A stretch of 59,628 bases of DNA, from positions 204,397-264,024 of the forward strand of contig JAKMXF010000345.1 in assembly GCA_024704765.1 (NCBI GenBank), written 5' to 3'. The notes beneath the pieces were generated by a model that was not told the origin of the DNA, searched no databases, and was given only the letters and a program-made list of their open reading frames with translations. This DNA comes from Oopsacas minuta. Lineage: Eukaryota > Animalia > Porifera. Of this stretch, positions 1 to 32,700 are shown piece after piece. A program made the position numbers and the translations under genes. Positions within the stretch are counted from its first letter, which is position 1. Every line of letters begins with the position of its first letter.

Positions 1-2004
1 GATATTTATAGGATTGTTCAATATGCCTCCACCTCCTATACTCCATATCAAGTTACTCAAGCTATAACTACTATCCATAGGATCACAAAGCAGTAATACA
101 TCCTCTCTGTCTATACCTACTGTATATGAGTAGGTAGTTTCTGTTACGGAAACTAAAGGAAAAAGAATACTAATAGATAATGATAGGCCACTATAACAAT
201 CTAGATTCCAAAGCGTCGTGCCAAAATGTTCGAAAATTGTGAAGGTATGGGTTCCCTATATATCTTCCAGACTTTTACCAACACTTCATAATCAATTCAA
301 TACTTTTATAACATATTTGATACCATGTTCCCCACCACTTACTTGTTGTAGTTTGATTGAACAATCCAATTGTATAACTATTGGTATCGTCTATTTGACA
401 CTGATAATATCCTTGTCTAGTATTGTATATGTCTAACCAACTGAATCCAGTTTGTGTGCTATTATATGTGGCTGTAAGCTCTTCACTATTTGATAGATTT
501 GAATTTTCTGAAAAGTTCCATACAATTGCATTATCCTCGTCTCCTCCACACGCTAACGTCAGTGATTGGTACAAGAAGGTGTTTCCACTCATTGGTTGAA
601 AGTCTAAACCTTCATTGATAAGTTCACCAAAGCTGGCACCTATATATGATGCACATAAATAATTTTCAGCTGAAAACCAAGGAAATTGCATGATTATATA
701 CTGACCTGTTGTTACAGACGAAGGCCTCTTGCATAGAAAAGCATTTATCGTGATTTCGCAGCTTACAGTTTCCCAATTACCCTCTCCAGTTGTGATTGTT
801 TCAACACAATCTTCATCATTCCCCGATGGTACCACACCTGTCCAGTTTGTATAACTATACACTGAACCATCAATCCAGGTATATGTTCCCTCTACACTCC
901 TATCATTCAATCCTATCCAGCAATTACTCACTGTATCAGGGATAATAGTGTATAAGTAATTATTCACTCTCTCTGTAGTAATACTAGTCAAGTCACCACC
1001 CCATACAGCACAACTAGATTGAGCATCTAACCAGTTGATTCCATCACTCACTTCATATAATCGATAGCAAAATCCATTATAGATCAGATCACATTCACTG
1101 GGTGTTGCTGGAAATTAAATACAATGAAATTTGCCTATATATTAGTCGACTTACTACCAATTGTCTAAGTATACAGTGACGTGTATTATTAATTAATTTA
1201 GCTGCTAGGAGCTTAAGGAGCTAAGGTTCTTCAATAATTCATTCGACATTCTATTTACTTCCTCGTACACCTATGGAATTGGTACTATGCAATACTACTA
1301 CTGTAATATAGAGTTAAGATATTAGCATTCTAGCATATTCATACAAATTATTCTTGATTAATAACTTACCAGGTTTATTGCAGAAGTAACAGTTTCTATC
1401 TAGGTCACAAAACCCATTTAGCCATCCGTTTGATATTGTAGTTCCATATTTGTACCTTAACCTAACACAATCATCATTCGTATCTGATCCAATGGGGTAT
1501 TGTGTCGGACCAGGAGTATTACCGAAATGTCTATAATTACTATTACTACCATCTACCCATACAAATGCATCAGCATTAGTACCAGCTTCACTCCCCCTAT
1601 CATTCAAACCTATGAAACAGGAAGTATGTGTCTGTATATCTTCTATAGTATAATACAATAAGCTATCCACTTGTACTGACCCGATTGAAGCAAGATGTCC
1701 TCCCCAATTTTTGCATTCTGTTTCAGCTTCTACCCAATTTATATTATTTTCTGCCAGCTTGAAGTAACTGAAGTCAGTATCATCAAATGTAAAAGTAAGG
1801 TCCGGAACCTGAGCTTGAGCTAAAGCATAACAAATACATTCAAATATGTGAATATCTAACTGATTATTCATGATAACTATTAGTCTAATACATTTACTAG
1901 ATGTTTACACATAAATTCTGCTTAAGGTACTCACCTGATTTGATTCTAATCAATGAACCAATTATCGCTAAGAATAATCCAATTTTATAACAGAGAGTTT
2001 TCAT
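1..2004 (-). CDS. Gene C (3'-partial): signal peptide + C-type lectin (CTL-B) + CTL-A + Ig-like 1 + Ig-like 2; member of the CTL/Ig receptor-PTP cluster, runs off the left edge
   Basis: Exons read from GT-AG boundaries: 2004-1935 (MKTLCYKIGLFLAIIGSLIRIKS, signal-peptide-like), 1819-1370 (CTL: WGGHLASI, CFIGLND, FVWVDG), 1107-706 (CTL: CWIGLND, WIDG, EDC, FLC), 639-343 (LACGG..W..QGYYQC), 152-<1. The complete internal exons are multiples of 3, phase 1-1. Confidence 0.85.
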
Positions 2005-2465
2005 GTTCAATTTCTTCCCGACTTTAGATTCTAATTGATGAGATATATTATCTACTGATTTCATTATATAGTCATACAATGTAGTTGAGAGGATAATTTA
2101 CAACTTCAGAAATTTGATATATCCTTTGAGTACATTGGAACACAAATTTGTTATTAGCAGAGTTTGAGTATTTGTTTTCTTGTAAATAGTTATTAGGTAC
2201 ATACACTGACACCATACATAGTAATTCTTCCCAAATTTTGTAGGTTGTCATGTCATATCCAATACGGGAAATGAGATATTAGTCATATTCCACATGAATA
2301 TAAATGTTATCCAACCATTCCATTGTAATCATTATTTGTAGAATTATCCACCTGTTGTATTACTTTATTGTGACGAGTGTTGTAACTTATTTTAAAATAG
2401 GAATTTATAACGTATTTTATATCTTATTTTGTTGTGTATTATATTTGCCAGTGATAGAATAACTT

Positions 2466-2655
2466 CACTAAAGTCTGCTTAATAGGGTCACATCTGGACC
2501 AGGTCATTTTGACCAGATTAAGTGGGATAAAGGTTTGTCCGATTAACTGAGTAATATAACACTATTTGAATGGTTCGGTTTCTAGCCTTGACCCCCGATT
2601 AACCAGGTTGACCAGATTAATCAATGGGATATTAATTGGATCCCGGAGTCTAGTG
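2466..2655. mobile_element. Degenerate MITE-like element (Tc1/mariner-pogo-type ends) between genes D and C
   Basis: Imperfect inverted termini (CACTAAAGTCTG / CGGAGTCTAGTG then TA) and internal CCGATTAA/CCAGATTAA repeats like those in the 45826-47023 element. Confidence 0.4.
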
Positions 2656-2972
2656 TATATATTTTGTAATTTATCTTGAATAATCTGTTAATATCCCTCA
2701 TAAATATGTTATAGTACCCAATGTCACGTAGCTTATCAAATGCCTTGTGTACATGTTATCTCTATTCCCACACATACACACTTATACCATAACATTATCT
2801 GATCATTATATATAACATTATTTAACAAACAAAGGCAAAATATACACAATTCTAAAAGACTTTCCAATTAAGAAATAGTTCTTATCTAACAATTCTAAAA
2901 TCATAAACATATACACCTGTGTTGTTTATATATGTACAAATAAACTAAAGCCTATATATTCGATTATACTTG

Positions 2973-5900
2973 TTATTGAGCCTTTGAGAAGTATTCGTTC
3001 AATAGTTGGAAGCAGGATACAAAGTGTGTCTAAAGAAAAATGCAGGTAAGAATACAAGCAATGTTTTGTTGAGTGCCTTCCAAGAATAATGAATCTAGTT
3101 TTTTCGTAAAATGTTATTCAATCAATATTATTTGCATTTATATAATTATGCCTTATGTTAGCACAGCTTAAACCTCTTTAACTATGTAACTCAAATGACT
3201 ATTTTATTGTTCAGTATCTTACTAAGGTTAGTTGCCAAATACGAATTGATACCTTAGATTTTGACACGGGGTAACTGACCCTTCAATTCATTTTTTTACA
3301 GTTGTTCTACTTTAGTATAATTGATATAGATATCATCATATTTTTGCCCTCATTTTTACATGTGTTTATTGGTTACGTATATTTCTCCCCCATTCATACC
3401 AATTCATATATCTATATTATTGAACCTCAAATGTTGTCTGTTTGTTTGTTCGTTGTCAAGGAAAGGATTTAAGGTATGCAATTGCAAAATTGTCCAAAAT
3501 ATTTTTTCACTTTTGGGAACATAAAGTAATCAGATTTAAAGATTATGGCAGTATCATGTTTGCTACGGTTAAGATTGTGAGTTTATGTACTCGAGGACCA
3601 TGGGCTTGAGTGTGGACACAATGTCTTCGCAACCGCATAGGACGAGCAAGCGATGCGCACTCGTTATATATAAAATATGTATTGTAACGAACCAGAGTAG
3701 TCACGCTATTCATTCTATCATTCCTCAGCTTCTTGACTATGTGGAAGATGTCAATACGGCCCTTCTCTATGCTATCTTTAATAGCCCTATAAACGGCGTA
3801 CACTACACCACTCTTGCCTGCTCCATCATCACAGTGTATTATGATTGGGTGACTTGGAAACTTCTTACGAAACTCTAACATTATTTCTATAATTTCAACA
3901 ATACTTTCCAAGTTTGGCTCTTCCTTCTCGTTCCACTGATTCGTTATAATTTGGGTGCAAGGTTGGTTACCTTTGTCAACATTATTGTTGATGTCCAATT
4001 TATTGCGAATGAAATGAGGCGTTTTTTCACTTTCCTCACATGTAACATCAAACGAATCTGTTTGGATAGTTTCGCCATATTTTGGCCAGTAAACAATACG
4101 GTGTGATTTTTGGAGTTCAATGAGTTGTAGTTCTTTCTTTGAGCATAACATTACAACTAAACTAGGGGCGAGCATATATATCATTTGATAGAAATCTCGT
4201 TGTGTATGATTTGTGGGATTAATGGTTACAACTATTTCTCCGTTATCTAAAGAACTGGCATTAATGTAATCACCAGGCCAATCAGAGGCTTGTAATACGA
4301 TTCTGTTGCTGTCACATGGTAGGATATCTTTGATTGGATTCTTGTCCTCGTTGGAGGGTTCCAGTGCACTCTTACAAACTGGATCAAAAGCCTTTTCGCA
4401 TTGATAGTTAAGTTCACTGTATTGTTGGAAAAACACAGATACATAACCTTCAGTCTCTGATTGCATGTATAAATTGTATGTCTCTCTGAAGTCTCCTGTG
4501 GGAATTGATGTGCTCCCTAGTATCATTTCAAGGACTGATAGATAAATGAATTTATACTGAGAGAATGTTTGTACCATTTGGGGACGATGCTCCCTCATTT
4601 CATGGACGATACTGTAGATATTGATGGGTTTCGCCTGTTGAACTGCTGCTAAAAGATTGTATAGCGTAATGAACGTGCCTGTACGACCTACACCTGCAGA
4701 ACAATGTACTAAAATGGGTGATCTCGGTTTGACTAAACTTTCCTGAACTTTGGTAACGAACAACAGCAACTCATCATGAAGTGTTGGAACATCATGATCT
4801 GGCCATGCAGTGAAATGAAAGTGTTTTAATTGAGTAACCTTTCCCATCGAGTGAACACTCATCATCCTTATAATATAGCCAATCCTTATCTCTACTTTGT
4901 CTGCAATTATCTCGTATGGCCCACAACCAAACTTTTGGCCTTTTTTCAATGGGAAATATTGTTCGCATTTCTTACGTCCTGATTCAACTAGGTTAGTCAC
5001 CATCACGATATTTGCTACATTCTTTTCTACGATCATTTTCCAAAAATCTTGAAGTGTGTTTTCTTTTGGCGCTTGCGCCGCAATAAATTGTTCTTGGACA
5101 TGAACCCCAGGGATATGACTTGCATTAATATATCCTGTATTCGGATCTTCATCATCACTGAGTGTTAGGATTACGCGAGATTTATCGTAGGGGTACATTA
5201 ATTTGAAGCGATTCTTGATTTTGTTCTCTTCAATCATTGCATGTGTACAGGGATATCTATGTTCTTTTCCACCGAAACTTTCATATTCTTGCTGAAGCGC
5301 ACCTTCTCTTTGCCAAATCTTATTCATATGCATCTTGAAAGCATCTAATGGTATTGGTAACATTCTGGGATCGATAACCTTTGTAGATCTGACTGGAGAT
5401 TGAGTTAATTTACCGACATTTTGATAAAGATCGCTAATCTCAGGCTCTCTCACATTCGGTTTTGTATTTACGGTATCACTTACGCTGTATGCTTTGTTGT
5501 AGTTATCTGATACTGCAGCTTCTTTATATTCTGTAAAATCACTAGCCTTCATTGGTATTTCAGATGAACTAGCTTTAGGGTCATTGTTAAAATAACTGGA
5601 ACTTAACTTGGACATTTTGCCTCGATTTCTTACTATAAAATACATGAGGATAACACCAGCGATGATACATACGAGCAGTAATGATATTATTATCACTGGA
5701 ATTGCAATGACCGCTGCGTTTATCCCTTCAGTTACTGGTCTATCTAGAGGTATTATAGTGAAACGAGCTGTTGTATAGCTGATTCCAGTACTAGTTACTT
5801 GCATCAATGAAAAGTTCCCACTATTAGCATCGGTTAACTCTGATATAATGTAGGTCGACCTGGTTATTGTAGATGTTTCATCAGGAATTATCCAAACACA

Positions 5901-7568
5901 TTCAGATAGACTGCAAGTGAGTGAAATATTTTTTGTTCCCAATGTGATACTGATTTCTTGTGGAGATGGAAACATTGGATTATTTTCATCACTAAATGAC
6001 ATACTAGATTCTTCATAGGTGACTGTTATTGTAGTAGTATCTAGAAATTATGTAAATGTACTACAACCATAGACGTTATACAAATTTATATTGTGGATAT
6101 GTGCGGATCGGATGTCAAACACGTGAAACAAGCAATTTACCTTTGAGAGCTAGTTGTACGCTACCCAACAGTGTTACTGGACTCATCCTGTAGAAACAAC
6201 TCAATGTATGTGCACCAGCTCCCACGTCGTTGAATACTACAATGAAGAGTACTGGATTTGGATATTCAGCACTATATGTCAATGTGTCACCGTCTTCTGC
6301 ACCGTCTGTTGTCCAAAGGATATCATTATCTGCGACCATATTATCTGAATAATAGAGCATTGAGATGGTAGAATCCAGGGTATAATCAACTTGTTGAGAA
6401 GGGTTATCAAAGCTTGTTATTTCAACTAGAAATATAAATATTGAGTAATTTCAATGTCTATAAGTCAATTTGCTCAATAGTTACCTAGGGAATCTGTATT
6501 CACTATAAAGAATGTGTATACCATATCTGAACCAATTTCACAACTATAGTAACCATGTTCATTAGAACTCACAGTCAAACTACTAATCCCAGTTTCAAGA
6601 GAGAATGTTGATGATGAAGTTCTGTCAATTTTCATACCATCCTTCGTAGACATAAAATTCCACGATACACTATCTCCTATATTCGAGATTGAACACTGTA
6701 ACACCGTAGAGTCTTTTAGTACAATTGTTGAATCGTTTGAGATTGAATCAGTTAATGATGTTGAAATTGGATTTGTCACAAAATAACCTAAAGTAATTTC
6801 GTTATATATAATATGTTCAACTCTCGGTTGAAATATTGTTTTAAACCAACCATTTCGGATTAATTCTGCCTGAATCGCAATCACTTCAATTCTATCCCAG
6901 TCCATGATATAGAATTGATACAGTCCAAATAATTCATAATTAAGAGTTGCATAAGATATTGTTTGAGAATAAGAATATGTATCGTTTGGAAGTTTCCATC
7001 TCCCTTGTAGATTTGTTGAGATAGAGAAATCTTCTATTCCAATCAGAAGTTCGAACATATTCGTGTCGGGGTATACAGTACTGAAGGTTTGATCTGATGT
7101 AGATACTGTAATTATTGGAGCTACATAGAGCGTTTGAATGTAAAATAACTGAAAATAGACACTACTAAGCTATGTAAATTGTGTAGTTCCCAAGACGGAT
7201 TACTCAAATTTCACTAGAAATTTCATATTTCATACGGTCTATATGCCAGCCATATGGTCAAATATGTGTAGTTCTAAATTGCAGTTGTCTTCATGGTATG
7301 TTCAATAGGAATATACACTTACTATATATTTCTACTGTATTCAACTGGATGTTAATCCCATTACTAGCACAAGTCAATTGATTACTCTGTTCAGGTGAGT
7401 CACTGCTCCATTCAAAGAGATTTATAGGATTGTTCAATGTGCCTCCACCTCCTATACTCCATATCAAGCTACTCAAGCTATAACTACTATCCATAGGATC
7501 ACAAAGCAGTAATACATCCTCTCTGTCTATACCTACTGTATATGAGTAGGTAGTTTCTGTTACGGAAA
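2973..7568 (-). CDS. Gene D (5'-partial): Ig-like domains + TM + active tyrosine phosphatase D1 + D2 (receptor-type PTP)
   Basis: Exons 7568-7323, 7120-6851, 6787-6485 (canonical Ig C..W..YYSC), 6425-6141, 6040-3693 (Ig-like, TM AVIAIPVIIISLLLVCIIAGVILMYFIV, D1 with KNRF, YINAS, WPDHDVP, HCSAGVGRTG, QTFSQY; D2 with HCDDGAGKSG) and terminal exon 3029-2973 (THFVSCFQLLNEYFSKAQ*). The 5' part is lost at the NNN gap. Confidence 0.92.
3420..3680. repeat. Dispersed repeat (Helitron/HINE-like non-autonomous element) in the last intron of gene D
   Basis: 3424-3492 closely matches 43201-43270; ~3500-3665 matches the reverse complement of ~41806-41965. It carries a CTGT/TTGT microsatellite-like tract and a GC-rich GCGAGC/GCTTGC-type end. 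Family assignment is by resemblance only. Confidence 0.55.
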
Positions 7569-7572
7569 CTAA

Positions 7573-7575
7573 NNN
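7573..7575. other. Assembly gap (NNN)
   Basis: Three N bases. The right side is mid-D2 coding sequence of gene B; the left side is an Ig-like-2 exon with its acceptor, paralogous to 10145-10390 and 1-152. Confidence 0.98.
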
Positions 7576-10500
7576 TCGTTTCAGTAGAATTGATCAAAGT
7601 AGAAACAAAAGGTTCACAATTGATAGGTTCATCCTTCTTAGGCCAGTAACAGACACGATTAGATATTCCACTGAGTATCTTAGCTTTCTCCTTTCTTGTA
7701 GTCAGCATTATCACCATACTAGCTTCTGTTTGATAGATCATTTGTAGGAAATCTAGATATGTCTCTTTAGTTGGATTGATGGTAGCAATGAATTGATAAT
7801 CATGAATATAACTAGCATTGATATAATTACAGTCAAAATGTGGAGAATCTAATACAACTCTGTTTTCATCAAATGGTAGAATGTTTTTGATTGGATTCTT
7901 TTGCATATTTTCCTTTTTCAATGCATCATAACTTTCTGGTATAACAGCCTTCTTAGATTCTTCATTTAACTTTTCAAATTCTACAAAAAATAATGAATCA
8001 TTTCCTATTCCAGATTCTACATACTGTTGATACATAACAGGGAAATCTTTTATAGGTATGAATTTAGCTGTGAATTTGTTTTCTTCCTTTACAGGACTCA
8101 TGGGTGTGTATTTCTCATAAGATAGATCTTCCTTTATTTCTATATAACCACTTTTCTCTTTTTTTGTTACATTTTGGTGTGTAATATTTTCACGTTGAAT
8201 ATTTGACAAATTAGCATAACCTCGTTCATTGGGATTAGTCGGCGCGTCTAGAGTAGTCAACGATGTCTCATCTATCGTCATATACACAGGATTTGTATTT
8301 ACAGATGAGAGATCTATGTACTCCTTAGATTGTGGATTGATTTCCGACAGATTAGCATAACCAGGATTACTTTCATAACCTGTTATATTGGATTTGGATG
8401 GTTTAGGACGTTTAGATAGTTTAGCCTTTGCTGGTCTCCTTCTCTTTACGTATAGAAAGATGAATATTGGAACTAGAATACTTGTGGCTACAATTATAAA
8501 TAGGATCAACAGCAAAATGATTATTATGGCTGCATCTCCAGAATTTGACGGAACAGAATTTGTTGGAGAGATCAGAATTTGTATCGAAATATGTACTGTG
8601 GTATATTCTACACCTTCACTAGTAGAACGAACCAATGAAAAAGTCTCGTTGAAGGTGGGAGTTATTTCCGATATGCTATATGTAGATGCAATTATTGTAT
8701 CTTTTTGATTTGATATCATCCATACACATTCAGGTAGACTGCAGGTTAACGTAATATCTTTTGTTCCTTGAAGTATACTGATTACTTGTGGAGATGGAAA
8801 CATTAGATTATTCACATCACTAAATGACATATTGTATCCTTCATAGCTGACAGTTATTGTAGCAGTATCTAGAAATTATGTAAAGAAACGTCAACAAATA
8901 AGCTATAGAAATATGCATTTTGTTGCTATGTGTGGATCTCACACACACTCAACAAGCAATTTACCTTTGAGAGCTAGTTGTATGCTACCTAACAGTGTAA
9001 CAGGACTCATCCTGTAGAAACAACTGAATGTATGTACACCAGCTCCCACGTCGTTGAATACTACAATCAGTAGAGCTGGATTTGGATACTCAGCACTATA
9101 TGTCAAAATGTCACCGTTTTCTACATTGTCTGTTGTCCAAAGGATATCACTATCTGCGACCATATCATCTGAATAATAGAGCACTGAGACAATTGAATCC
9201 AGAGTATAATCAACTTCTTGAGAAGGGTCATCAAAGCTTGTAATCTCAACTAGAAATACAATTATCAAGTAATATCAATGATGAAAGATGGTCTAACAGT
9301 CTATTACTCAAAGTTACCTAAGGAATCTGTATTCACCACAAAGAATGTGTATACCATATCTGAATTGATTACACAGCTGTAGTAACCAGGTTCATTAGAA
9401 TTCACAGTCAAACTACTAATCCCAGTTTCAATTGTGAATATTGATAATGAAGTTTTCTCTATTCCAATACCATCCTTTGTAGACATAAAATACCACACTA
9501 CACTATCTCCTATATTCGAGATTGAACACTGTAACATTGTAGAGTCATTTAGTACAACTGTTGAATCGTTTGAGATTAAATTTGTTACAACATAGCCTAA
9601 AGTGAAGGTTGTCATTTGTATGTATATGTTAAACTCTCGGTTGAAAATATTTTGATCTAAACTAACCATTTCGTATTAATTCTGCCTGAATCGCAATCAC
9701 TTCAATTCCATCCCAGTTCATGATATAGAATTGATACAGTCCAAATAATTCATAATCAAGAGTTGCATAAGATATTGTTTGAGAAGAAGAATATGTAGCA
9801 TCTGGAAGCTTCCATCTCCCTTGTAGATTTGTTGAGATAGAGAAATCTTCTATTCCAATCAGAAATTCAAACATATTCGTGTCAGGGTATACAGTGTTGA
9901 ATGCCTGATCTGATGTAGATGTAGAAACTGTAATTATTGGAGCTACAGAGAGCATTTGAATGTAAAATAACTGAAAATAGACACTACTAAGCTATGTAAA
10001 TTGTGTATTTCCCAAGACGGATTACTCAAATTTCACTAGAAATTACATATTTTATAGGGTCTATATGCCAGCCATATGGTCAAATATGTGTAGTTCTAAA
10101 TTGCAATTGTCTTTGTGGTATATTAAATAGGAATACACACTTACTATATATTTCTAATGTATTCAACTGGATGTTATTGCCATTACTAGCACAAGTCAAT
10201 TGATTACTCTGTTCAGGTGAGTCACTGCTCCATTCAAAGATATTTATAGGATTGTTCAATGTGCCTCCACCTCCTATACTCCATATCAAGCTACTCAAGC
10301 TATAACTACTATCCATAGGATCACAAAGCAGTAATACATCCTCTCTGTCTATACCTACTGTATATGTGTATGTAGTTTCTGTTACGGCAACTAAAGGAAA
10401 AGAATACTAATAGATAATGATAGGCCATTATAACAATCTAGATTCCAAAGCGTCGTGCCAAATGGTTCAAGAATTGTGAAGGTATGGGTTCCATATATAT

Positions 10501-13500
10501 CTTCCAGACTCTTACCAACACTTCATAATCAATTAGATACCTTTATAACATATTTGATACCATGTCCCCACCACTTACTTGTTGTAGTTTGATTGAACAA
10601 TCCAATTGTATAACTGTTGATCTCGTCTATCTGACACTGATAATATCCTTGTCTAGTATTATATATGTCTAACCAACTGAATCCAGTTTGTGTGCTATTG
10701 TAGGTGGCTGTAAGCTCTTTACTATTTGATAGATCTGAATTTTCTGAAAATTTCCATACAATTGCATTATCCTCGTCTCCTCCACAAGCTAACGTCAGTG
10801 ATTGGTACAAGAATCTGTTTCCACTCATAGATTGAAAGTCTAAACCTTCATTGATAAGTCGACCAAAGTTGGCACCTATATATGATGCACATACATAATT
10901 TTCACCTGAAAACCAAGGAAATTGAATGATTATATACTGACCTGTTGTTACAGATGAAAGTCTCTTGCATAGAAAAGTATTTATCGTGATTTCGCAGCTT
11001 ACAGTCTCCCAACTACCCTCTCCAGCTCTTATTATGTCAACACAATCTTCATCAATAACAGTTGGTGCACTTCCTGTCCAGTTTGTATGACTATATACTG
11101 AGCCATCACTCCAGGTATATGTTCCCTCTACACTCCTATCATTCAATCCTATCCAGCAATTACTCACTGTATCAGGGATAATAGTGTATAAGTAATTATT
11201 CTCTCTCTCTGTTGTAATACTAGTCAAGTCACCACCCCATACAGCACAACTAGATTGAGCATCTAACCAGTTGATTCCATCACTCACTTCATACAATCGA
11301 TAGCAAGATCCATTATAGATAAGATCACATACGCTGGGTGTTGCTGGGATCAAACAAATTCATTATTTTCATTAAACAACTACATGTAATGATCACTTAC
11401 CTGGTTGACTGCAGAAGTAACAATTTCTCATGTCACCACAACCTCGATTAATCCAACCGTTTGATAATACTGCTGCTACATTCCTGTATCTCAATCTAAC
11501 ACAGTCCCAGGCAGCATTTGCATCTCCGGGATTTATTCCAAGAAGCGAATCGAAGTTCCTATAAGTACTGGTACTACCATCTACCCAAACAAATGCACTA
11601 GCATTAGTACCAGCATCTATATCTATATCGTTTAGACCTATAAAACATGTAAAGTATGTGTTTATATCTGTACTACTATAGAACAACAATCTATCTTCTA
11701 CTGCTGACTTTATTGTAGCAAGATTTCCCCTAGTACCCCAGTTATTACATTTCAGTTGAGCACTTAACCAGTCTAAATTAGTAGAATTCGAGATAAATCC
11801 GAAAGAAGTACCACCATAAGTAAATTCTTCATCTGGGATTAAAACTAAAAACATTAGATTATAAATACTTTTCAAACTAAAATTATTTGGTGATAAATAT
11901 CATCTACCAAAAGTATCTGTATTCCGAATAACACAATTGAAGCAACTAATCTTACGTTTTTGCACCCAATTAATACAAATGAATACTCAGAAGTATATAC
12001 CTGGTCGAGGAGGTGCAGATGTAATGTTAATTTGCATAGCTATCACTTCTTCTTGATTCCAGTTGTTAGCAGAATAGAATGTGTATAATCCAGCGTTTTC
12101 TTCCATAAATTCAGCAATTTCTATCGTTGAGTCAGTAGTGTTCATATCTCCTGGAATATTCCATTTTCCAACTAGGTTGATAGATATAGAAATATCTATT
12201 GATTCTAATAGTATAGCAATCATATTCGTGGATGGATATGTTGATGAGAAGCTTTCAGCCAAGAATTGACCATAGAAAATGGATATTTCAGGAACTATAG
12301 ATATGAAAAATGATAAATATATCAGTTAGTAAAGTGTACCATAAATATTGATCGAATACCTGTCACCGAAAGATAGATCATAACGATAGTAGTTCCTTCT
12401 CTCATACAGCTGAATGCTCTAGACTCTGTTGGTAATGTAGCACTCTCAGTATTTACGTGAATTGGGTTATTATACATACTATCCCACATAATTGTACTCA
12501 AACTACCAATCTCAGTAGGATCACACAATAGTAATATATCTTCACTGTCTACCCCTACTAGGTATATGTATGTTTCTCCTTCAACCGCAACTAGATGGAA
12601 AAGTTAGTAGAGAATATTTCAGAAATATCAATTAACAATCTACTCACCTGTTGTTAAAGATGGATCATACAAACCAATTATATAAGATGATGTACTGGTT
12701 TGACACTGATAATATCCTTGTTTGGTAATATTAACTGCTAACCAACTTAATCCAGTTTCTGTACTACCATATGTTGCTGTCGTAACTTCACTGTTTGATA
12801 GATCTGAGTTTTCTGAAAAATTCCATATGATATTATTACTCTGTTCTCCTCCACATGCTAAGGTACGTGAAGTGAACAAGAAAGTGTTTGAGCTAAGCAG
12901 TTGGAAGTCAAATCTTTCGTTAATGAGTTCTCCAAATCTATCAACTGAGAGTAGATAGGAATGAGAAATGTGAAAGAATCTTAGAATTTATATAAAATTA
13001 CAAACCTATTGTTACAGTACTAGTTGAAGCTCTTTTGCATACAAAAGTGTTTAGATTATCCTCACAGTTCACAGTTTCCCAACTAACACCTCCACCTGTG
13101 TTAATCTCAATACAATCGCCATCAGTAGTTGGGGGATTTGTCCAGTTCGCATAGCTAAATGTTGTACCATCAGTCCAGGTATAAGTTCCCTCCTCACTCC
13201 GATCACTCAATCCTATCCAAGAATTATTATTCAATATGATAGTATATAAGTAGTTATTCTCTCTCTCTGTAGTAATACTAGTCAAGTCACCACCCCACAC
13301 AGCACAACTAGATTGAGCATCTAACCAATTGATTCCAGTACTCACTTCAAATATTCGGTAGCATGATCCTTCATAGATGAGATCACATACATTGGGTGTT
13401 GCTATAGGTAAACAAAACACATTTATGATCTAATTCGATATACAAACTTTAGATACACGATATAAGGTTACTCTCGGGTACCCAATGTATTCTTATACCG

Positions 13501-16500
13501 TACATGTTGTTATATAAAGGTCATATTATAGTTGTATTTTGCATAAAATGTACAAATATGTTGTTACCTGGTTTTGTGCAGAAGTGACAATTTATTAGAA
13601 TATTACAAAAATGATTAATCCATCCATTTGATATAGGACCAGCACCTCCTGGTTTATATCTGAAACTAACACAATCATAGTCAGCTGTATCTGCAGGGTA
13701 TGTCGCTCCTGATGTACCGAAGTTCCTATATGTACTTGTGTTGCCATCTACCCACACAAATGCACTACCATCAGTACCAGCATCTACAAGTATATCATTC
13801 AGGCCAATATAGCATCTAAAGTATGTTTGTATATCCGTTATACTATAATATAATAAATCGTCTTCTACTTCTGACTTGATTGTAGCAAGATTTCCTCCCC
13901 ATAAGATACAGCTGAGTTGTGCAGTTAGCCAGTCTATAGAAGGTGAATTGGTGAAATATCCAAATGTTGTTCCATCAAATGTAAATTCTTCTTCTGGATC
14001 CATAACTAAGATAGATTATGTATTTGTATAAAAAATCGCTACTTTCTGAGGTAAGTGTATTCAGCGTGTATATATTCAAGAGCCTTTTCATGTATGTTAA
14101 TTTTACAATATAATTCATAGAATATTTGTTTTAAGAATATTTTACCTGTAAGAGCAGGTGATGATGTAATGTTAATCTGCATAGCAATCACCTCTTCTTG
14201 ATCCCAGTTGTCATCAGTATAGAATGTATATATTCCTTCATCAGCTTGTATGAATTCTGAGATAACTAAAGTGGAACTTGTAGTATCCACACCTTCTGGA
14301 TCAGTCCATTTTCCCTCTAGGGTAATGGTGAGAGAAACATTTTTTGTTTCTAATGCGATATCAATCACATTCATTGATGGATATGTTAATGAGAAGCTTT
14401 CAACCAGAAACTGACCGTAGTGAACGGACATTTCGGGAACTAAAGCAACAGTTTGTATATATGAAGATAGCTTTTATTGAAATGATATGAAATTCACCTG
14501 TAATTGAAAGATTGATAGTAACGATGGTAGTCCCTTCTCTCATACAGCTAAATTCTGTAGACTCTGTTGGTAATGTAGCACTCTCAGTATTTACGTGAAT
14601 TGGGTTATTATACATACTATTCCACATAATTGTACTCAAACTACCAATCTCAGTAGGATTACACAACAGTAATACAGTGTCTCTGTCTACTCCTACAATA
14701 TATATGTATGTTTGTCCTTCAACCGCAACTAGATAGATAAGTTGGTGTTATCAAGACTGTAAAATATATTAAAATATATTAAAGTGATCTACTTACCTGT
14801 TGTTAAGGATGGATCATACAATCCAATCGTATAAGTTAATGAATTGACCTCGCACTGATAGTAACCTTGTTTGGTAATATCAACTGCTAACCAGCTCCAT
14901 CCAGCTTCCATATTCTCATAGGTTGGCGTTTCTGGTTGACTAGATGATAGATCTGAATTCTCTGAAAATAGCCATGTAATGGCTATATTCTCTTCTCCTC
15001 CATAAGCTAATGTATGTGGGGTGAACAAAAATGTGTTTTCACTAATTGTTTCAAAGTTTAATCTTCCATTAGTAAGTTGTCCAAATCCTCCAACTAAAGC
15101 ACATATACATATGCTATATCAAATTTCTAGCGTTATAGTATAAATAATATATACTGACCTATTGTTACAGATGAATTTCTTTTACATAGAAAAGCATTTG
15201 TCGTTGTTTCACAGTCCACGGTTTCCCAATTACCTCCTCCAGCACTTGTTATTTCTACACAATCTTCATTGCCAGCATTCGGTGGGCTATTTGGCCAATT
15301 AGTATAAGTAGATGTTGAATCATCAGTCCAGGTATATGTTCCATCGTTATTATCTCTATCATTCAATCCTATCCAGCAATTACTCACTGTGTCAGGGATA
15401 ATAGTGTATAAGTAGTTACTATCTCTCTCTGTAGTAATACTAGTCAAATCACCACCCCATATAGCACAACTAGATTGTGCATCTAGCCAGTTGATTCCAT
15501 CACTCACTTCGAAGACTCGATTGCAAAATCCATTATAGAACAGATCACATCCTTGTGAGTTACCTACAAATTTTAGACGATAAAGTACCAGAAATACAGT
15601 TATAGTAACTAATAAGTAATAAGACTTTTGATAAATATCAATTACCTTGTTTATTACAGATGTAACAATTTGTAGTATCAGTACAAGCTTGATTTGCCCA
15701 ACCAGTTGATAATTCACCAGTAGATTTGTATCTGTTTCTGCCACAGTCCCAAGTGGCTGTTGCTACAGGATATGATTGTCCAAGTGTATCGAAGTTCCTA
15801 TAAGTACTGTTACTACCATCTACCCATACAAATGCATTAGCATCAGAACCAGCATCATTTTCTATATCATTTAGACCTATCCAACATGAAAAGTATGTAT
15901 TTATATCTGTACTACTATAGAACAGTAAGCTATCTTCTATTGCTGAGTTGATTGTAGCAAGATTTCCTCCCCAGTTCAGGCAATCAAGTTGACTAGTAAA
16001 CCATGTTGTATCAGTGGTAGTGAAGAACCCAATTGCTGAATTATCGTATGTTAGTTCAATATCTGGAGTTCCTATAGGAATACATTTTATTAAATTCGAT
16101 TAGTTTTCGGTATGATCGAAAGTTTTTCAACTGATTATATCGCATTTGAGTGGTATGGCAGATAACATACAATTCCCCAGGAAAAAATGATAATATAACA
16201 TACCCATACCTGTCACTGTAGTTGAAGATGTTAATTGAATTTGGATGATACATACTTCATCATTATCCCAGTTGTTGGTATAGAACTTGTATAATCCACC
16301 GTTTTGTGATGAAAATTTTGGAATAGTTAAAGTAGATCCTGTAGAATTCGTATCATCTGGAAGAGTCCAACTACCATCAATATTGATTGACAGGATAACA
16401 TCTTGTACTGCTAAAGGAACTGCTAGCGTATTCACCTCTGTACAGAGTAATGTAAAGTTTTCAGCTGGTACAACACCGTAACTTATGGTTAACAAGGGGG

Positions 16501-19464
16501 CTACAAACAATATTGATCCATAATTGCGATCAAAAAGAATATTTCATTCAAATTCAAGATGTACCTATTACACTGATGGTATTTGTTGATAATACAGTAG
16601 CACCTCTCTTGCAGGAAAATTCTGTAGAATCCTCTGATAAAGTAGCTCTTGAATTATATATATTGATAGGATTAATGAAGTCTCCAAAACCTAATAGAGT
16701 CCATCTCAACATACTCAAACTACCATTGTCCATTGGATCACACAACAGTAATACATCCTCTCTGTCAATTCCAACTATATAATGATATGATGAAGCTCCT
16801 GCTGCAACTAAATAGAAGAATTTGAGGTCAATGAATTAGTAAGTGGGATAATAATATATAGAAATATTACACAGAGATATACTCACCAGTTGTTAATGAA
16901 TTATCATATAAACCAATCGTATAAGTTGTTGAATTGGCCTCGCACTGATAATATCCTTGTTTGGTAATATCAACTGCTAACCAGCTCCATCCAGCTTCAA
17001 TATTCTCATAGGTTGCTATTTCTGGTTGGCTAGATGATAGATCTGAATTCTCTGAAAATATCCATGTAATGGCTATATTCTCTTCTCCTCCATAAGCTAA
17101 TGTATGTGGAGTGAACAAAAATGTGTTTTCACTAATTGTTTCAAAGTCTAATCTTCCATTAGTAAGTTGTCCAAATCCTCCAACTAAAACATATACATAT
17201 GCTATATCAAATTACTAGCGTTTATAGTATAAATAATATATACTGACCTGTTGTTACAGATGAATTTCTTTTACATAGAAAAGCATTTATTGTTGTTATG
17301 TCACAGTCCGCAGTCTCCCAACTACCCTCTCCAGTTCTTATTATGTCAACACAATCTTCATCAATAACATTTGGTGCACTTCCTGTCCAGTTTGTACGAC
17401 TATATACTGAACCATCAATCCAGGTATACGTTCCATCGTTATTATCTCTATCATTCAATCCTATCCAACAATTACTCACTGTATCAGGGATAATAGTGTA
17501 TAAGTAATTATTCTCTCTCTCTGTAGTAATACTAGTCAAGTCACCACCCCATATAGCACAGCTGGATTGAGCATCTAACCAGTTGATTCCATCACTCACT
17601 TCAAATAATCGATAGCAAAAGTCATTATAGATCAGATCACATCCTTTTGAGTTACCTATCAAATTAAATAACTAAATTGAATAAAAGTATTTTCAACAGT
17701 TTAGTAAATTGAAAGTAACAAAATACATTTTATTATATTTTCCCAGTTCAGTATTTTCCTTTCTTATCTGTATTATTTTAGTGTAACCATTGTCCAGGAT
17801 TTTATACATCAATACAGGATTCTCGAGATTATTATTTTGAATAGTCGGATGTTACAATTATGTGATTAGAGATAAACTTCCCTGAAGATGTCGAATTTTA
17901 CCCATAGTATACTATTGCTACACATAACACAACTCATTTTAGAACCTGCATGCAGCTAATATATAATCTTGCTATCACATAGCTGTCTTTAACTTTTCTG
18001 AAGAATATACATAAATTCTTAAACTGGTTACCAATACCAGCGGCAGCTTTGTAATGTTAAATGAGGTCTCACGCTATTTCTATTGCAAAATTAAACATCC
18101 ATTTATATTTTTCTATAAGTACTTATCAAATAATTATTAATATAATGTCCAGGATCTTGTCCAGGACTTTGAAAATTATCTCCAGGAAAATTCCAGGAAT
18201 TTTAATGTATGATGCTCCAATATACTGGAATTAGACCTAAATATGCTGGTCACCATAAAATTTATTTTTGAGGCTTACTTTTTACTACAATCACTTACCT
18301 GCTTTGTTGCAGAAGTAACAAGACCTAGTAAGTTCACAACCTCTATTAATCCAACCGGTTGATAATTCTCTTACTACATTGTTATATCTGAATCTAACAC
18401 AGTCCTGACCAGCAACTCCTGTGGGACTTACTACTCCAAATTCAGATTGGAAGTTCCTATAAGTACCGGTACTACCATCTACCCATACAAATGCACTAGC
18501 ATTCGTATCAGCCTCTACATCTATATCATTTAGACCAATTAAACATGCAAAAGCATTATCTAAATCTGTTATGCTATAGAACAATAAGCTGTCTTCTACT
18601 CCTGACTTGATTGTAGCAAGATTTCCTCCCCAGTTATTGCATTCTAATTCGGCATCTAGCCAATTTATTGGGCTCACTATGAAGTATCCAAAGGTTGTAT
18701 CATCATATATTAGAGAAATATTAGGAGTTTGTGCTTAAGAAAGAGATTAAGAATATGTTATTAAATTTATACGTTAGTATATTGACTAGCTAATTCTATA
18801 CAAAACTATTCAACCGAACCATTTTACAAAGTCATTCTACATATATATCCTAATATTTACTTATAATTATAGGTTATGTGTCGGACAAATACTACAATTA
18901 TTACATCGTTAAGTATACACCATTTAATCGTCCAAACTTTAATGGGATTACTAGAACCTGCATTCCGATATTGTAAGGAACTTTAACCAAGCATATCGTA
19001 GCAGGTAGCAAACATGGATACATTGAATTAAACTCCGCGAATTGTGGATAATTATGGCGTCCAATGCTATTTTCTCGGGTTGTAGCTTGACCCGTATCAA
19101 TAGTATAATCCTATGAATATTGGTTTGGTAGAAACCTGACCAACCTGACCAACCCGACCGCCTTCTACAGCAATTAGTATGAACTAGGGTCAACTATGAT
19201 ATTTACCAAATTCTGTTTATTAACGACCCCCAAGTGCAGTAGCTGGACAAAGGTCCTTATGACAGACGTTCCCTACGTACACGTCATGTAAAAGTTGTGG
19301 TAATAAGATTCGACTGTTTACGAAAAGTACGCACATGTATATACATATTTGCTATTAGCTAAGTCAGAAATTTTAAACATAATAAGATAGTTACCTGTTA
19401 AGATGCCGGAAAGTGAAGCACTTATCGTGAACAATAGAACAACTTGATGAAAGTTAGTTCCCAT
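7576..19464 (-). CDS. Gene B (3'-truncated by gap): signal peptide + 4 x [CTL-B, CTL-A, Ig1, Ig2, Ig3] + 3 further Ig-like + TM + Tyr-motif tail + D2-like pseudophosphatase; about 2,860 aa up to the gap
   Basis: Exons: 19464-19395 (MGTNFHQVVLLFTISASLSGILT); module 1 18733-18299, 17655-17248, 17183-16887, 16807-16565, 16500-16210; module 2 16071-15646, 15563-15159, 15093-14797, 14728-14498, 14439-14146; module 3 14005-13568, 13401-13006, 12944-12648, 12590-12360, 12294-12001; module 4 11844-11401, 11343-10942, 10875-10579, 10390-10145, 9942-9667; then 9596-9318, 9249-8965, 8868-gap. All 22 internal ectodomain exons have lengths divisible by 3 and GT-AG ends; no stops were seen. Confidence 0.88.
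15646..16071 (-). CDS. Intact CTL-B exon of gene B largely missed by the ORF track (no in-frame ATG)
   Basis: Translates openly as GTPDIELTYDNSAIGFF..LDCLNWGGNLATI..SCWIGLND..FVWVDG..WDCGRNRY..GWANQAC..NCYICNKQ; acceptor TATAG, donor GTAATT; 426 nt. Confidence 0.9.
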
Positions 19465-20826: not shown

Positions 20827-21073
20827 AATACAATTATTCTCAATTTAATTTCTCCGTTTTATGCATACAAATATATGGGATAGATTATTAAGTAATTTGA
20901 CTGAGGTTTGCTGACTACCAGTATATGGAAAATTTAACTTTAGAGATATATTCTTACATTTATCTGTGTTGTAGGCAGTCAGAGAGTTAAATTACTCAAA
21001 TTACTATTAAATAATAGAATACTTGTGTATTGGAGAAGTTCTGTTTGGAAAGATATTATTTTATGGTGAAGGA

Positions 21074-26700: not shown

Positions 26701-29700
26701 TGTTTTCACTAATTGTTTTAAAGTATAATCCCTCGTTAATTAGATGCCCAAATCCTCCTACTAAAGCATGAAATAGATATATTCACATAATCAAATACAG
26801 TGGAGTTCGCTTACTAGCAAGTCGAATTTTGCACAAGAAAACTTGCTAATAGGCGCACTTGCTAATAGAGCAACTCAATCAATTTGATAAATACTATTGT
26901 TGTATCTACACGTACATACGTGTATGAGATAATATAATACGTAAAAGCAACCACAATTTCCTCTAAATTGAAGAATGTAAATTAGGTTTACTACTATATT
27001 ACAGAATAATTTCATTATAACAAGTTCTTGTTAGTAAACGAACTAAAGGTTCCTTTATTAAGTTATTAGCAAGTCGTGTTTTTGAGAAAACTTGCTTATA
27101 GGGCGAGCTTGCTAATAAGTGAACATAATTAATGCAATTTGGGGCCATTGTGAACCTTAAAACAAACTTGCTATTAGGCGAATCTTGCTAATAAGGCTAT
27201 TGCTAATAGACGAACACTACTGAAGCTAATATGTATGTGGATGAATAATATACTGACCTGATGTTACATTTGAAGGTCTTTTGCATAGAAAAGCATATCT
27301 CGTCATTTTACAGCCCAGGGTGCCCCAACTACCCTCTTCAGCATTGATGATTTCAACACAATCTTCATCACTGACAGATGGTGCACTTCCTGTCCAGTTC
27401 ATATGATTATATACTAAACCATCAGTCCAGGTATAAGATCCATCTCCATCTCTATCATTCAATCCTATCCAGCAATTACTCACTGTATCAGGGATAGTAG
27501 TGTATAAGTAGTTATTCTCTCTCTCTGTAGTAATACTAGTCAAGTCACCACCCCATACAGCACAACTAGATTGAGCATCTAACCAGTTGATTCCAGTACT
27601 TACTTTAAATAATCGATAGCAAAATCCATTATAGATCAGATCACATCCTTGTGAGTTACCTATCAAATATGGAAAATATCTTGAGTTTGGTGGGTTGAAA
27701 GAACAGAATTACATTTGACATATATTTCTCACATTCTTGCATATAATTAATAGTTTCATTGATAATAATCTATTATTTGGTTGTCACAAAATCACAGTAA
27801 TGTAATGAAGTGAAACGAATTGCCATATAACGAAATCGGTATTTCCGATCACTTACCTGATTGACTGCAGAAATAACAACTTCTACGGGTTTGACAACCT
27901 CGATTAATCCAACCTGTTGATAATACTCCTGCGCGCTCCTGTATCTGAATCTAACACAGTCCCATGGAGCATTTGAATCTCCGGGATTTATTCCAATAAG
28001 TGAATCGAAGTTCCTATAAGTACTTGCACTACCATCTATCCATACAAATGCGCTAGCATCAGTACCAGCTTCTACATCTATATCATTTAGACCTATAAAA
28101 CATGAAAAAGCATTATCTAAATCTGTTATGCTATAGAACAATAAGCTATCCTCTTCTGCTGACTTGATTGTAGCAAGATTTCCTCCCCAGTTGATGCAAT
28201 AGAGTTGTGCAGTTATCCAGTTTATGACTGGAGAAATTGTAAAATATCCAAAAGTGTTATCATCTAATATAAATTCTTCTTCTGGGTTCCTTTCTAACAA
28301 ACAAGATTATTATTATATTCATCATCAAATTTTGATATCCACGAGTGTAAAATTAATTACATATATCATGTACTATTACCTGTAATAGCTGGTGAAGATG
28401 AAAGAGTAATTTGTATAGCACACACATCAACTCCATCCCAGTTGTTAATATAGAATTCGTATAGCCCAGCATTTCCTTCCATGAAATTATCAATTGATAT
28501 ATTAGATCGAGTGGGGTTTGCAAGCCCTAGAACAGTCCATTTTCCAACAATATTGGTAGAGAGAGTAATATCTTGTGTTGATAATGGGATAGCAAGCTCA
28601 TTCATAGCTGGACAGACAGCTGTGAATTTACTAGCACTGATGCTACCAATGTGAATTGTTAATTCTGGAACTAAATAAACACAATATTCATATAGATATA
28701 GTGGAACCTACAATGTAACACATGCAAATGGAGACTAATACGATCTTTCCGCATCATGTAACCGTTACTAATATGTTCCCCTGTACACTACATATCAGAT
28801 AATGAAACAATAATTATTGAATAAATAGTTACCTTGCAAGCTGATAAAGTTTGAATATATTATACTTGAATCTCTGACACAATTTATTCCAGTAGATTGT
28901 TCTGGTAAAGTATTCCTCTCATTGTATATGTTGATAGGATTCAGGAAATCTCCACTACCTGTTAGAGACCACTTCAGCATACTTAAATCATCACTGACAA
29001 CAGGATCGCATAACAGTAATACATCCTCTCTATCTACTCCTACTATATATACATATGGAGTACCTTCTGTTGCAACTAAATGGAAGAATGGAATTTCAAT
29101 AGATTAATAAGTGGGGTAAGAACAGGTTTCTGCGCGGGCCGCATTCTAATTCCAAATTTTATGCGGGCCGTATTGACCTACGACTACGTTCCATGTCCTA
29201 ATTTATTAGAGAAACTCTACTAGCGAATTGAAAAATAAAACAATAATTATGCATAATAATTAACAAATAGTATTCAAATTTTCCATGGGGACGGAATTTC
29301 CGAATACGTGAGAAGAGTAATACAGTGATCAAATAATTTGAGTACTCAAACAACTTAAGCCAGGCGGGCCGGTTCAAGATCACAAGCGGGTCGGATCCGG
29401 CCCGCGGGCCGTAGCTTGCCTACCCTGAATAATAATATATAGAAAATATCACACAAAGATATACTCACCGGTTGTTAATGAATTATCATATAAACCAATC
29501 GTATAAGTTACTGAACCGACTTGACACTGATAATATCCTTGTTTGGTAATATCAACTGCTAACCAGCTCCATCCAGTTTCCGCATTACTATATGTTGCTG
29601 TAAGTACTTCAATATCTGATAAATCTGAGTTTTCTGAAAAATTCCATATGATAACATTGCTCTCTTCTCCTCCAAAAGCTAATGTACGTGAAGTGAAAAA

Positions 29701-32700
29701 GAATTCGTTGTCGCTAATTGTCCCAAAGTCTAATCCTCCATTAGTAAGTTGTCCAAATCCCACAGCTAAAACATGATATGTATTAATATATTGTATCCAA
29801 TAGCTACTATTTATATGGAATTGTAGCATTCGCATTATACTGACCTGTTGTTACAGATGAAGGTCTCTTGCATAGAAAAGTATTTATCGTGATTTCGCAG
29901 CTTACAGTCTCCCAACTACCCTCTCCAGCTCTTATTATTTCAACACAATCTTCATTACTAAAAGATGGTTCACTCCCTGTCCAGTTTGTATGACTATATA
30001 CTGAACCATCAATCCAGGAATATATTCCATCTCCATCTCTATCATTCAATCCTATCCAGCAATTACTCACTGTATCAGGGATAATAGTGTATAAGTAATT
30101 ATTCTCTCTCTCTGTAGTAATACTAGTCAAGTCACCACCCCATATAGCACAACTAGATTGAGCATCTAACCAGTTGATTCCAGTACTCACTTCAAATAAT
30201 CGATAGCAAGATCCATTATAGATCAGATCACATCCTTGTGAGTTACCTATCGAATTAAGTAACTAGATTGAATAAAAGTATTTTCAACAGTTTAGTAAAT
30301 TGAAAGAACAAAATACATTATATTATATTTTCACAGTTCAGTGTTTTCCTTCTTATTTGTATTATTTTAGTGTGACCATTGTCCAGGATTTTATACATCA
30401 AATACAGGATTCTCGAGATCATTATTTTGATTAGTCGGATGTGAAATTATGTGATTAGAAATCAACTCCCTGAGATATCGAATTTTACCCACAATATACT
30501 ATTGCTACACATAATACATCATAACTCATTTTAGAACCTGCATGCACTAATATATATTCTTGCTATCACATAGCTATGTCTCTAACTTTTCTGAAAAATA
30601 CACATCAATTCTTAAACTGGTTACCAATACCAGCGGCAGCTTTGCAATGTTCAATGAGGTCTCACGCTATTTCTATTACAAAATTGAACATCCATGTATA
30701 TTTTTATATAAATGCTTGTCAAATAATCATAAATATATTGTACAGGATCTTGTCAAGGACTTTGAAACTTATCTCCAGGAAAATTCCAGGAATTTGAATG
30801 TATGATGCTCCAATATACTGGGATTAGACCTAAATATGCTGGCCAACGGAAATGTAGTTTTGAGGCTTATTTTTACTACACTCATTTACCTACTTTGTTG
30901 CAGAAGTAACAAGACCTAGTAAGTTCACAACGTCTATTAATCCAGCCGGTTGATAATACTCCTGCTAGATTGTTATATCTGAATCTAACACAATCACAAT
31001 TAGGAAATTTATCTGAGGGACTTGGTATACCAGGATTTGGATCGAAGTTCCTATAAGTACTGTTACTACCATCTACCCATTTAAATTCACTAGCATTCGT
31101 ATCAGCCTCTACATCTATATCATTTAGACCTATATAACATGAAATATAGTCTGTATCAGGTCCTTGTGTACTATAAAACAATAAGTTGTCTTCTTCTGCT
31201 GACTTGATTGTAGCAAGATTTCCTCCCCAGTTATTGCATTCTACTTCAGCATCTGGCCAATTTATTGGGCTCACTATGAAGTATCCAAAGATCGTATCGT
31301 CATATATTAGAGAAATATTTGGAGTTGTTGCTTGAGCTAAAGAGAGAGATTTAGTACAGTAGTTTGAAATTGACCAACAGTTTGTGACATATACCTACAA
31401 TTTTTCTGATTTTTTCGGGACATCTCCCTATTTTCTCTAATCAGGTTGGCAATACTCGTATTGATATATCCATAGCCTACTAAATATAAGGCCTAACAGT
31501 AAAAGTACTAGGGATGCAGGAGTAGCTGCAAGTATTTATATACATGGTTTCTTTTGTATAGAAAAGGTGCATCTTGGCACTAATAAATGTAATGTACATT
31601 TGTAGAACATCAAATTTTACACCAATAAATGCTAAAACTTTCAGGAATGCGTCAAAATATGTGTCTAGTAAGCATTTATTTAGCAAAATATGTCATTCTT
31701 TGATGACTTGTAGAACGTTAAATATTGCTTATACCAACTCAAAGTGAACTAATGAATGATTTATAGATACTTATATAAAAAATGTCAAAAAATTGTCATT
31801 CAAAAGTTGCCTCGTTGTTGAGTTACGGTAAAGACCATGGATGACAGTCTTTTAGGCATATTCAATGGGGGACCGTCGTTAGTCCTACTCTACATGTAAG
31901 CGTTAGTCCCAATTCTGATTTGTAGGTGTTAGTCCTACCTATAAAATAGCTATTTTATCTTTTTCATGAGTAGATGTTAGTCGTACTCTAAATACTGGCA
32001 ATAGTCCTACTCTTTTCAGGAGTAGACGTTACTAGCATTAGTCTTTGTTTCACAGTTATGGCAACCAAGAATATGAGCAGTTATTTTTCCACTAATTGGA
32101 TGCCAGTGATTGATTTTCATGGCATTAGCATTGGATCTTGGACCTGAGAGTTTGTTGGGAGTTTCCCTGACGTCCCTACGTGTTACCAAGTGCCTATATA
32201 ACTCACCAAGGTGATTGAATTGGAATTAACTTGGATTATCTAACTTAATTGCATTAGCTGAGAATATGAGCATTATAACATTAGCTATCAAATGTTCAAG
32301 AATGACATATTTTACTAAATTATTACATATTTTGACACATTACTGAAAATTTTTAGCATTTCTTGGTGTAAAATTTGATGTCCTACAAAAATGTAATACA
32401 TTTATTCAGGCAAAATGCATTTTTCTGCAATAATGAAACCCTGTGTATAAATTCTTTAGGCTAATACTGCATCCCTGGTGCCAAAACTTCCAGTTACGGT
32501 TAGCCCTCATGTTTAGAAGGCTATGATATATCATATATGTTTAGGGTATATGCATTTCTGGGACCGTCACGACTCGTAAATTAGGTACGCTAACTAATAA
32601 AAGTATTAATTATCTATATTATCAAAACTTAATTATTATACATGTATGTTTGTTTGTTTGTCCACTTTGTATTATAATAATATGGGATGAAGACCTGCGT

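Follow-up and report, generated by a model that had tools for sequence, protein, structure and literature searches.

The repeated exons described here lie in a 59,628-nucleotide stretch of AT-rich animal DNA from the glass sponge Oopsacas minuta (assembly GCA_024704765.1, contig JAKMXF010000345.1, positions 204,397 to 264,024 of the forward strand), which is called the window below and whose first letter is position 1. They encode C-type lectin-like domains (CTLDs) of two subtypes, CTL-B and CTL-A, in an arrangement reminiscent of the C-type lectin receptors of vertebrate natural killer (NK) and myeloid cells, the mannose-receptor family and the receptor-type protein tyrosine phosphatases (RPTPs). 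The NK/myeloid receptors, which include Ly49, NKG2D and the CD23/Dectin groups, share with the sponge domains the CTLD fold (CD23 is the best structural match), the loss of the canonical Ca2+/sugar site, a clustered multigene family, a variable surface formed by the long loop and the β3–β4 region, and signalling through tyrosine motifs or phosphatases. They are type-II proteins with a single CTLD that recruit SHP-1 or Syk, whereas the predicted sponge receptors are type-I, multi-module proteins with immunoglobulin (Ig)-like domains and a covalently attached phosphatase. As in the mannose-receptor family (PLA2R, DEC-205, FcRY and MRC1/2), tandem CTLDs, most of them without sugar-binding residues, are combined in one ectodomain; unlike that family, the sponge proteins lack ricin and FNII domains, have two CTLD subtypes in alternation with Ig-like domains, and end in a phosphatase tail. 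The RPTPs, whose alpha/epsilon type provides the nearest vertebrate matches, have the same order of a transmembrane (TM) segment followed by D1 and D2 phosphatase domains, although some of the sponge copies carry only a D2-like domain. A literature search returned no described RPTP with such a lectin/Ig ectodomain and no description of lectin/Ig receptor phosphatases in sponges, and the sponge family, a large one in tandem array, is apparently undescribed.

Closer to Oopsacas in lineage, a C-type lectin of Aphrocallistes vastus is a putative glass-sponge aggregation factor that has been linked to cell–cell adhesion (Gundacker et al. 2001, as cited in PMC5400394). As far as that citing description goes, the A. 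vastus lectin is small, Ca2+-dependent and galactose-binding, unlike the modules considered here, and it is likened to them by description only. The C-type lectin repertoires of invertebrates such as bivalves have undergone lineage-specific expansion with diversified binding motifs (PMC10140915); the bivalve lectins are mostly secreted single-domain proteins, whereas the sponge domains are exons of modular receptor phosphatases. The reading that we consider reasonably probable for the Oopsacas locus is that of a family of modular receptors whose lectin-like modules each retain a loop that is old and distinct from the others, on a framework under purifying selection and partial concerted evolution.

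On the minus strand, a repeated exon set extends from 34 kb down to 0.3 kb of the window. Each module has the order CTL-B, CTL-A and Ig-like exons, and exons for a TM segment and tyrosine-phosphatase domains close each module series. A putative RPTP architecture is read from the genomic exons: ectodomain and TM/phosphatase exons are collinear on one strand, with the latter downstream. The combination of Lectin_C and Y_phosphatase domains is also found in annotated Oopsacas paralogues. From signal-peptide-like exons and module order, three tandem genes, A, B and C, can be read as putative gene models; gene C continues past the window edge. Its signal peptide is likely encoded by an exon at 1935–2004, MKTLCYKIGLFLAIIGSLIRIKS, which ends in phase 1 and lies 115 nt upstream of the first CTL-B exon of that gene. 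All protein and domain searches were run one exon at a time, with the exons kept unspliced.

An original prediction, made from the letters of the window, had singled out seven CTL-B copies with a conserved framework and a hypervariable long loop with indels. All seven are present on the minus strand, with loop peptides identical to those it had listed, and the positions by which it named them are the 3′ ends of the exons: 30890 and 27857 in gene A, 18299, 15646, 13568 and 11401 in gene B, and 1370 in gene C. The copies are referred to by these positions. Every exon is bounded by an AG acceptor and a GT donor (7/7), and in six of the seven the length is divisible by three with phase 1-1, the exception being the 27857 copy.

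The variable segment belongs to a genuine CTLD. Pfam PF00059 (Lectin_C) is matched by CTL-B at 29–37 bits and by CTL-A at 64 bits, with a cut-off of 22.6. The AlphaFold model of the 18299 copy, built from an alignment of 58 sequences, has a predicted local distance difference test score (pLDDT) of 94.3 and a predicted template-modelling score (pTM) of 0.89, and it shows the two helices, β core and long loop of the CTLD fold; the loop itself is modelled at pLDDT 88–94. Foldseek places CD23 at the top (template-modelling score, TM-score, 0.72–0.84), together with CL-K1 and the carbohydrate-recognition domains of scavenger receptors, within an overall TM-score range of 0.7–0.85. By sequence, the closest solved chains are CTLDs of the mannose-receptor family (E 1e-33 to 1e-40). 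Among 57 sequences of the family, the CTLD cysteine pairs and the WIGL-type strand (C31, C111, C132, C141 and I-G-L-N) are invariant or nearly so; W83 and Y-R are also invariant, and there is an extra cysteine pair, C63/C138. Since the variable segment lies between β2 and β3, it is the long-loop region, as had been proposed. The long loop and the β3–β4 region form the usual binding face of CTLDs, and the loop would be expected to contact a ligand.

A proline in the loop, kept in 54 of the 57 sequences, occupies the position of the proline in the EPN and QPD motifs. Neither motif occurs in any of the seven copies, which have S-P-T/S, Y-P-V/A/I or N-P-G at that position, and WND is likewise absent from all seven, with W-[I/L/A]-N on β4 instead. 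Nor is the glutamate two residues before the β3 cysteine conserved in the seven copies, the pre-cysteine position being hypervariable. The seven copies thus lack the canonical Ca2+/sugar site: S, Y or N stands where EPN has its glutamate, and W-[I/L/A]-N has replaced WND. Because these residues are missing, the ligands are likely to be proteins or non-canonical glycans, and each module position may have its own specificity.

Variability is unevenly distributed over the domain. Mean pairwise identity among the seven copies falls from 0.69 in the framework to 0.27 in the loop, which is 14–17 residues long and in which one glycine and one proline are the only invariant residues. The loop ranks first in entropy among 124 windows of 17 columns, and none of 20,000 random column sets matches its mean entropy. 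The RY-to-GW hairpin, also predicted to vary, has an identity of 0.34 over β3–β4 and a length of 8–10 residues. Variability extends further, to four variable clusters in all and the N-terminal linker; identity is 0.35 in the β4–β5 turn and 0.41 in the α2–β2 segment. WGGNLATI, IGLND and FVWVDG are nearly fixed, as the original prediction had described them, but the framework overall is only about 69% identical.

The codons of the framework and the loop change at different rates. By counting methods, the ratio of nonsynonymous to synonymous divergence (pN/pS) is 0.50 in the core, 1.11 in the loop and 0.95 in the hairpin. Goldman–Yang likelihood with one dN/dS ratio (omega) per region was applied to ten CTL-B exons of Oopsacas with 17 loop alignment columns (14–17 residues) and to seven close paralogues of a second species with 14 loop codons and no loop indels. 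With a shared synonymous rate, omega in the core is 0.21 in Oopsacas and 0.19 in the second species, which shows that the framework is under purifying selection (omega about 0.2); omega in the loop is 1.34 (p = 0.08 against 1) and 1.58 (p = 0.07), respectively. When the loop is given its own synonymous rate, its omega is 0.94 in Oopsacas and 1.87 (p = 0.27) in the second species. For Oopsacas, a free synonymous rate per region fits better (twice the log-likelihood difference, 2dlnL, 19.5), and the loop rate is 1.8 times that of the core. A joint profile over both sets gives an omega of about 1.4–1.5 (p = 0.016) with the shared rate and a best value of about 1.0 (2dlnL = 0, p 1.0) with the loop's own rate. 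In the CTL-A partner domain, loop omega is about 1.2. From these CTL-B and CTL-A values the loop is therefore unconstrained on average; an omega above 1 is suggested but not established.

Different parts of one exon have different histories. Between the 15646 copy and an Oopsacas paralogue, synonymous divergence (pS) rises from about 0.03 ahead of the loop to about 0.5 in the loop and all that follows it. The 27857 and 11401 copies are the reverse case: they have a young C-terminal part, including the loop, in common. Trees of the two exon halves have the same topology with branch lengths that differ several-fold. At synonymous sites, the CTL-A exons have diverged less from one another than have the CTL-B exons with which they share modules (mean pS 0.26 versus 0.42, and 0.07 versus 0.39–0.44 in some pairs), and concerted evolution is therefore stronger on CTL-A than on CTL-B. 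The pS jumps, the discordant branch lengths and the contrast between CTL-A and CTL-B all bear the mark of gene conversion.

The first modules of genes A and B provide the clearest comparison. Divergence is 7.9% in the 700-bp intron that follows the exon and about 8% in the exon framework, but 46.7% in the loop (p = 7e-11). It reaches 48% (p = 1e-7) in a 30-bp patch in the α2–β2 segment of the 30890 copy (31140–31169, TQGPDTDYIS), which also carries a 3-bp insertion. Loss of constraint cannot raise divergence above the neutral rate, so either the flanks were homogenised with the loop skipped, or the patches were imported, or selection accelerated their change. The raised synonymous rate of the loop favours recent homogenisation of the flanks with the loop skipped. 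In this comparison of genes A and B, the loop has thus stayed outside the homogenisation of its flanks.

In the proposed explanation, the seven paralogous exons would encode the membrane-distal CTLD of a repeated CTL-B/CTL-A/Ig module, and these modules would sit in three tandem type-I receptor genes ending in tyrosine-phosphatase or phosphatase-like tails. The fold-forming framework would be held by purifying selection and, in places, homogenised between copies by gene conversion. The long loop, the β3–β4 hairpin and the β4–β5 turn would be under few constraints apart from their anchors (a glycine, the [S/Y/N]-Pro pair and Asp-Cys) and would take substitutions and small indels at a roughly neutral rate, outside the homogenisation. 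As these segments would be left out of it, each module would retain an old, distinct putative binding surface. Anatomy, fold, rate differences and mosaic histories are observed; that keeping the loops distinct is functionally favoured is what we infer from them.

The original prediction had offered a different cause, repeated adaptive replacement in the loop that drives the copies to different ligands, and this is an alternative that deserves serious attention although we regard it as doubtful. Loop omega exceeds 1 in two independent species sets when the synonymous rate is shared, the joint estimate then being significant, and the loop has six times the divergence of the flanking intron. Site models add to this: M2a is preferred over M1a in Oopsacas (p = 0.009–0.012 on three trees), with about 5% of sites at an omega of about 3.8; of the sites whose posterior exceeds 0.8, two lie in the loop. 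In the second set (p = 0.08), the candidate sites all fall in the loop or hairpin. However, no single test is significant against an omega of 1, and the excess disappears from the Oopsacas and joint estimates once the loop has its own synonymous rate. Recombination and gene conversion undermine site tests on a single tree and inflate M2a. The CTL-A loop has a comparable omega, and within near-identical clusters the excess of loop over core differences is only 2.5-fold, some subtypes keeping their loop conserved. What stands of the prediction is that the loop is among the fastest-changing parts, with point estimates of 1.34 and 1.58; neither is significantly above 1, and by model the loop ranges from 0.9 to 1.9. 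This lies on the borderline of the refuting condition that the original prediction had set for itself, a loop dN/dS of no more than 1.

Relatives of the CTL-B exons were collected by a word search with one exon, which found 54 exon-sized proteins, three from Oopsacas and the rest from ENA assemblies. Exon-sized queries reach short proteins only, so that the long annotated Oopsacas proteins lie outside these sets. The closest proteins with a species name are those of Oopsacas; three short contigs of this sponge carry paralogous CTL-B exons with 74–77% protein identity and DNA stretches of 90–96%. The loci in the ENA assemblies share the layout of CTL-B, CTL-A and Ig-like exons and phosphatase, and a search with a phosphatase exon found >100 related receptor phosphatases in the same assemblies; because of this shared architecture, the assemblies are most likely those of other glass sponges. 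In the 57 sequences, fixed columns and variable clusters coincide with those of the seven copies, and in about 50 relatives from the ENA assemblies, as in the seven copies, change is fastest in the loop, the hairpin and the β4–β5 turn. Pairs more than 90% identical in the core have a mean loop identity of 56%.

In a tree of framework columns only, from which the loop, hairpin and β4–β5 turn were left out, the 1370 copy groups with a clade from other assemblies (bootstrap 99), and this clade shares the loop scaffold G..G.T[FY]P[IV]G. The overall 2.5-fold excess of loop over core differences in near-identical clusters comprises a value of about 1.2 in the 1370 clade and values of 6–8 in two others. 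The loops are thus subtype-specific and, in some subtypes, conserved across species. Some relatives from other sponges have EPN, QPD or EPD at the position of the loop proline. One group of paralogues (P0040 and P0182–P0186, on ENA contigs of 2.5 and 1.8 Mb) shows no difference over the first ~95 residues, yet one member carries EPN and the others QPD; the β4 motif differs as well (WHD versus WYE/WHE), and the same three paralogues are found in both ENA assemblies. To judge from these motifs, the paralogues show that loop changes in the CTL-B family can fall on the classical specificity switch. Elsewhere among the relatives, three ENA samples (L008:4332-4805, L009 and L010) have exactly the same DNA sequence for one CTL-B exon, which hints weakly that this locus is not extremely polymorphic.

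A further alternative is relaxed constraint alone, with the loop a structurally tolerant spacer under neutral drift that plays no part in recognition. An omega of about 1 in three data sets and the tolerance of indels are what such a spacer would give. Neutral drift alone, however, cannot produce a loop that is six times as diverged as the adjacent intron, nor does it account for conserved anchor residues, a confidently modelled loop, loops conserved within subtypes across species or a canonical EPN or QPD at the same place in relatives, and we think it improbable that relaxed constraint is the whole explanation. An artefact, in which pseudogenised or misassembled repeat copies owe their differences to decay or assembly noise, would fit the frameshift in the 27857 copy and a gap of three Ns at 7573–7575. 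With six of seven exons intact in splice sites and phase, a framework omega of 0.2 and the same architecture in independent assemblies of other sponges, it is very improbable. The frameshift is a 1-bp deletion near 27933, after CVRFRYRS; with an N placed at the break, the downstream frame still reads GWINRGC...CYFC and all conserved residues are kept. It may be a pseudogenising mutation of very recent date, an error of the assembly or a sign that the exon is skipped, and skipping would preserve the frame because the other six CTL-B exons have phase 1-1.

Several points weigh against a modular family with old, homogenisation-free loops. The likelihood code was purpose-written and not cross-checked with PAML, loop indels make the Oopsacas loop alignment uncertain, and both codon data sets are small. 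Exact and 3-mismatch searches of the window and 13 loci found no conversion donor for either diverged patch of the 30890 copy, so import by gene conversion is not demonstrated for this gene A/B pair. Finally, the point estimates of omega above 1 in two species and the M2a result of p = 0.009 mean that a few loop sites may truly be under positive selection.

Two Oopsacas loci on other contigs resemble parts of the cluster. A 3.2-kb contig (L002:1-3234) collinearly matches the 5′ portion of gene A (window 30896–34065), with 96% identity over the first 329 bp, 77–87% thereafter and a quite different CTL-B loop. Either a paralogue or a highly divergent haplotype would fit; its assignment as an allele was rejected as unproven, the introns being only 77–87% identical. 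An annotated 2,484-residue Oopsacas protein at L007:1-3271 has Lectin_C and two phosphatase domains, and its 3′ part is 90% identical to window 25303–26006, which makes it a large paralogue on another contig. Within the window, the partial protein-tyrosine-phosphatase (PTP) exon that follows the gene B modules is the one broken by the NNN gap. Downstream of it, region 3543–7494 holds a second set of Ig-like exons and then a TM exon with two PTP domains, and the two tails could belong to two genes or represent alternative 3′ ends. The receptor cluster is flanked by two NHL-repeat β-propeller genes and a multi-exon 5-oxoprolinase/hydantoinase gene, at 35447–36805 (+), 40145–41203 (-) and 47351–58613 (-). 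Coordinates of the exons are collected in Table 1.

Table 1. Exons of the lectin/Ig receptor-phosphatase cluster in the window; genes A, B and C are putative models
Feature	Position	Strand	Remarks
CTL-B, gene A module 1	30890..31336	-	447 nt, AG/GT; loop 30996-31043 DPNPGIPSPSDKFPNC
CTL-B, gene A module 2	27857..28293	-	437 nt; loop 27962-28006 DSLIGINPGDSNAPW
CTL-B, gene B module 1	18299..18733	-	loop 18405-18449 QSEFGVVSPTGVAGQ; copy used for structure prediction
CTL-B, gene B module 2	15646..16071	-	loop 15749-15790 DTLGQSYPVATATW
CTL-B, gene B module 3	13568..14005	-	loop 13677-13718 GTSGATYPADTADY
CTL-B, gene B module 4	11401..11844	-	loop 11507-11551 DSLLGINPGDANAAW; two-residue insertion in WG-TR-GNLATI
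CTL-B, gene C module 1	1370..1819	-	loop 1473-1523 GNTPGPTQYPIGSDTND
Seven partner CTL-A exons, one after each CTL-B	275..30190	-	followed by Ig-like exons
CTL-A IGL[ND/SD] anchors	30055, 27468, 17464, 15372, 13216, 11152, 916	-	
TM and phosphatase exons downstream of modules	3543..8830	-	
TM, Tyr-rich tail, partial PTP domain	7499-8830	-	
TM and two PTP domains	3543-6002	-	
Further TM/PTP exon	23769-25241	-	

Glass sponges (hexactinellids) reject non-self tissue yet lack the aggregation-factor genes of demosponges (PMC5400394). In a bolder proposal, which strikes us as unlikely, the CTL-B/CTL-A/Ig receptor phosphatases would be a germline-diversified system of glass sponges for recognition of self and non-self or of microbes: selection against homogenisation would preserve the differences between loops, modules could be skipped thanks to symmetric phase-1 exons, and paired tails with phosphatase and tyrosine motifs would signal in opposite directions. 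The locus also carries a caution, in that antibody-like loops on near-identical frameworks can arise when gene conversion makes the flanks uniform but passes over the loop; a pattern of variable loop and uniform framework does not require positive selection. In the sponge itself, lectin-like and Ig-like modules that are coupled to phosphatase signalling, with a loop of its own in each module, provide a concrete candidate for recognition in glass sponges.

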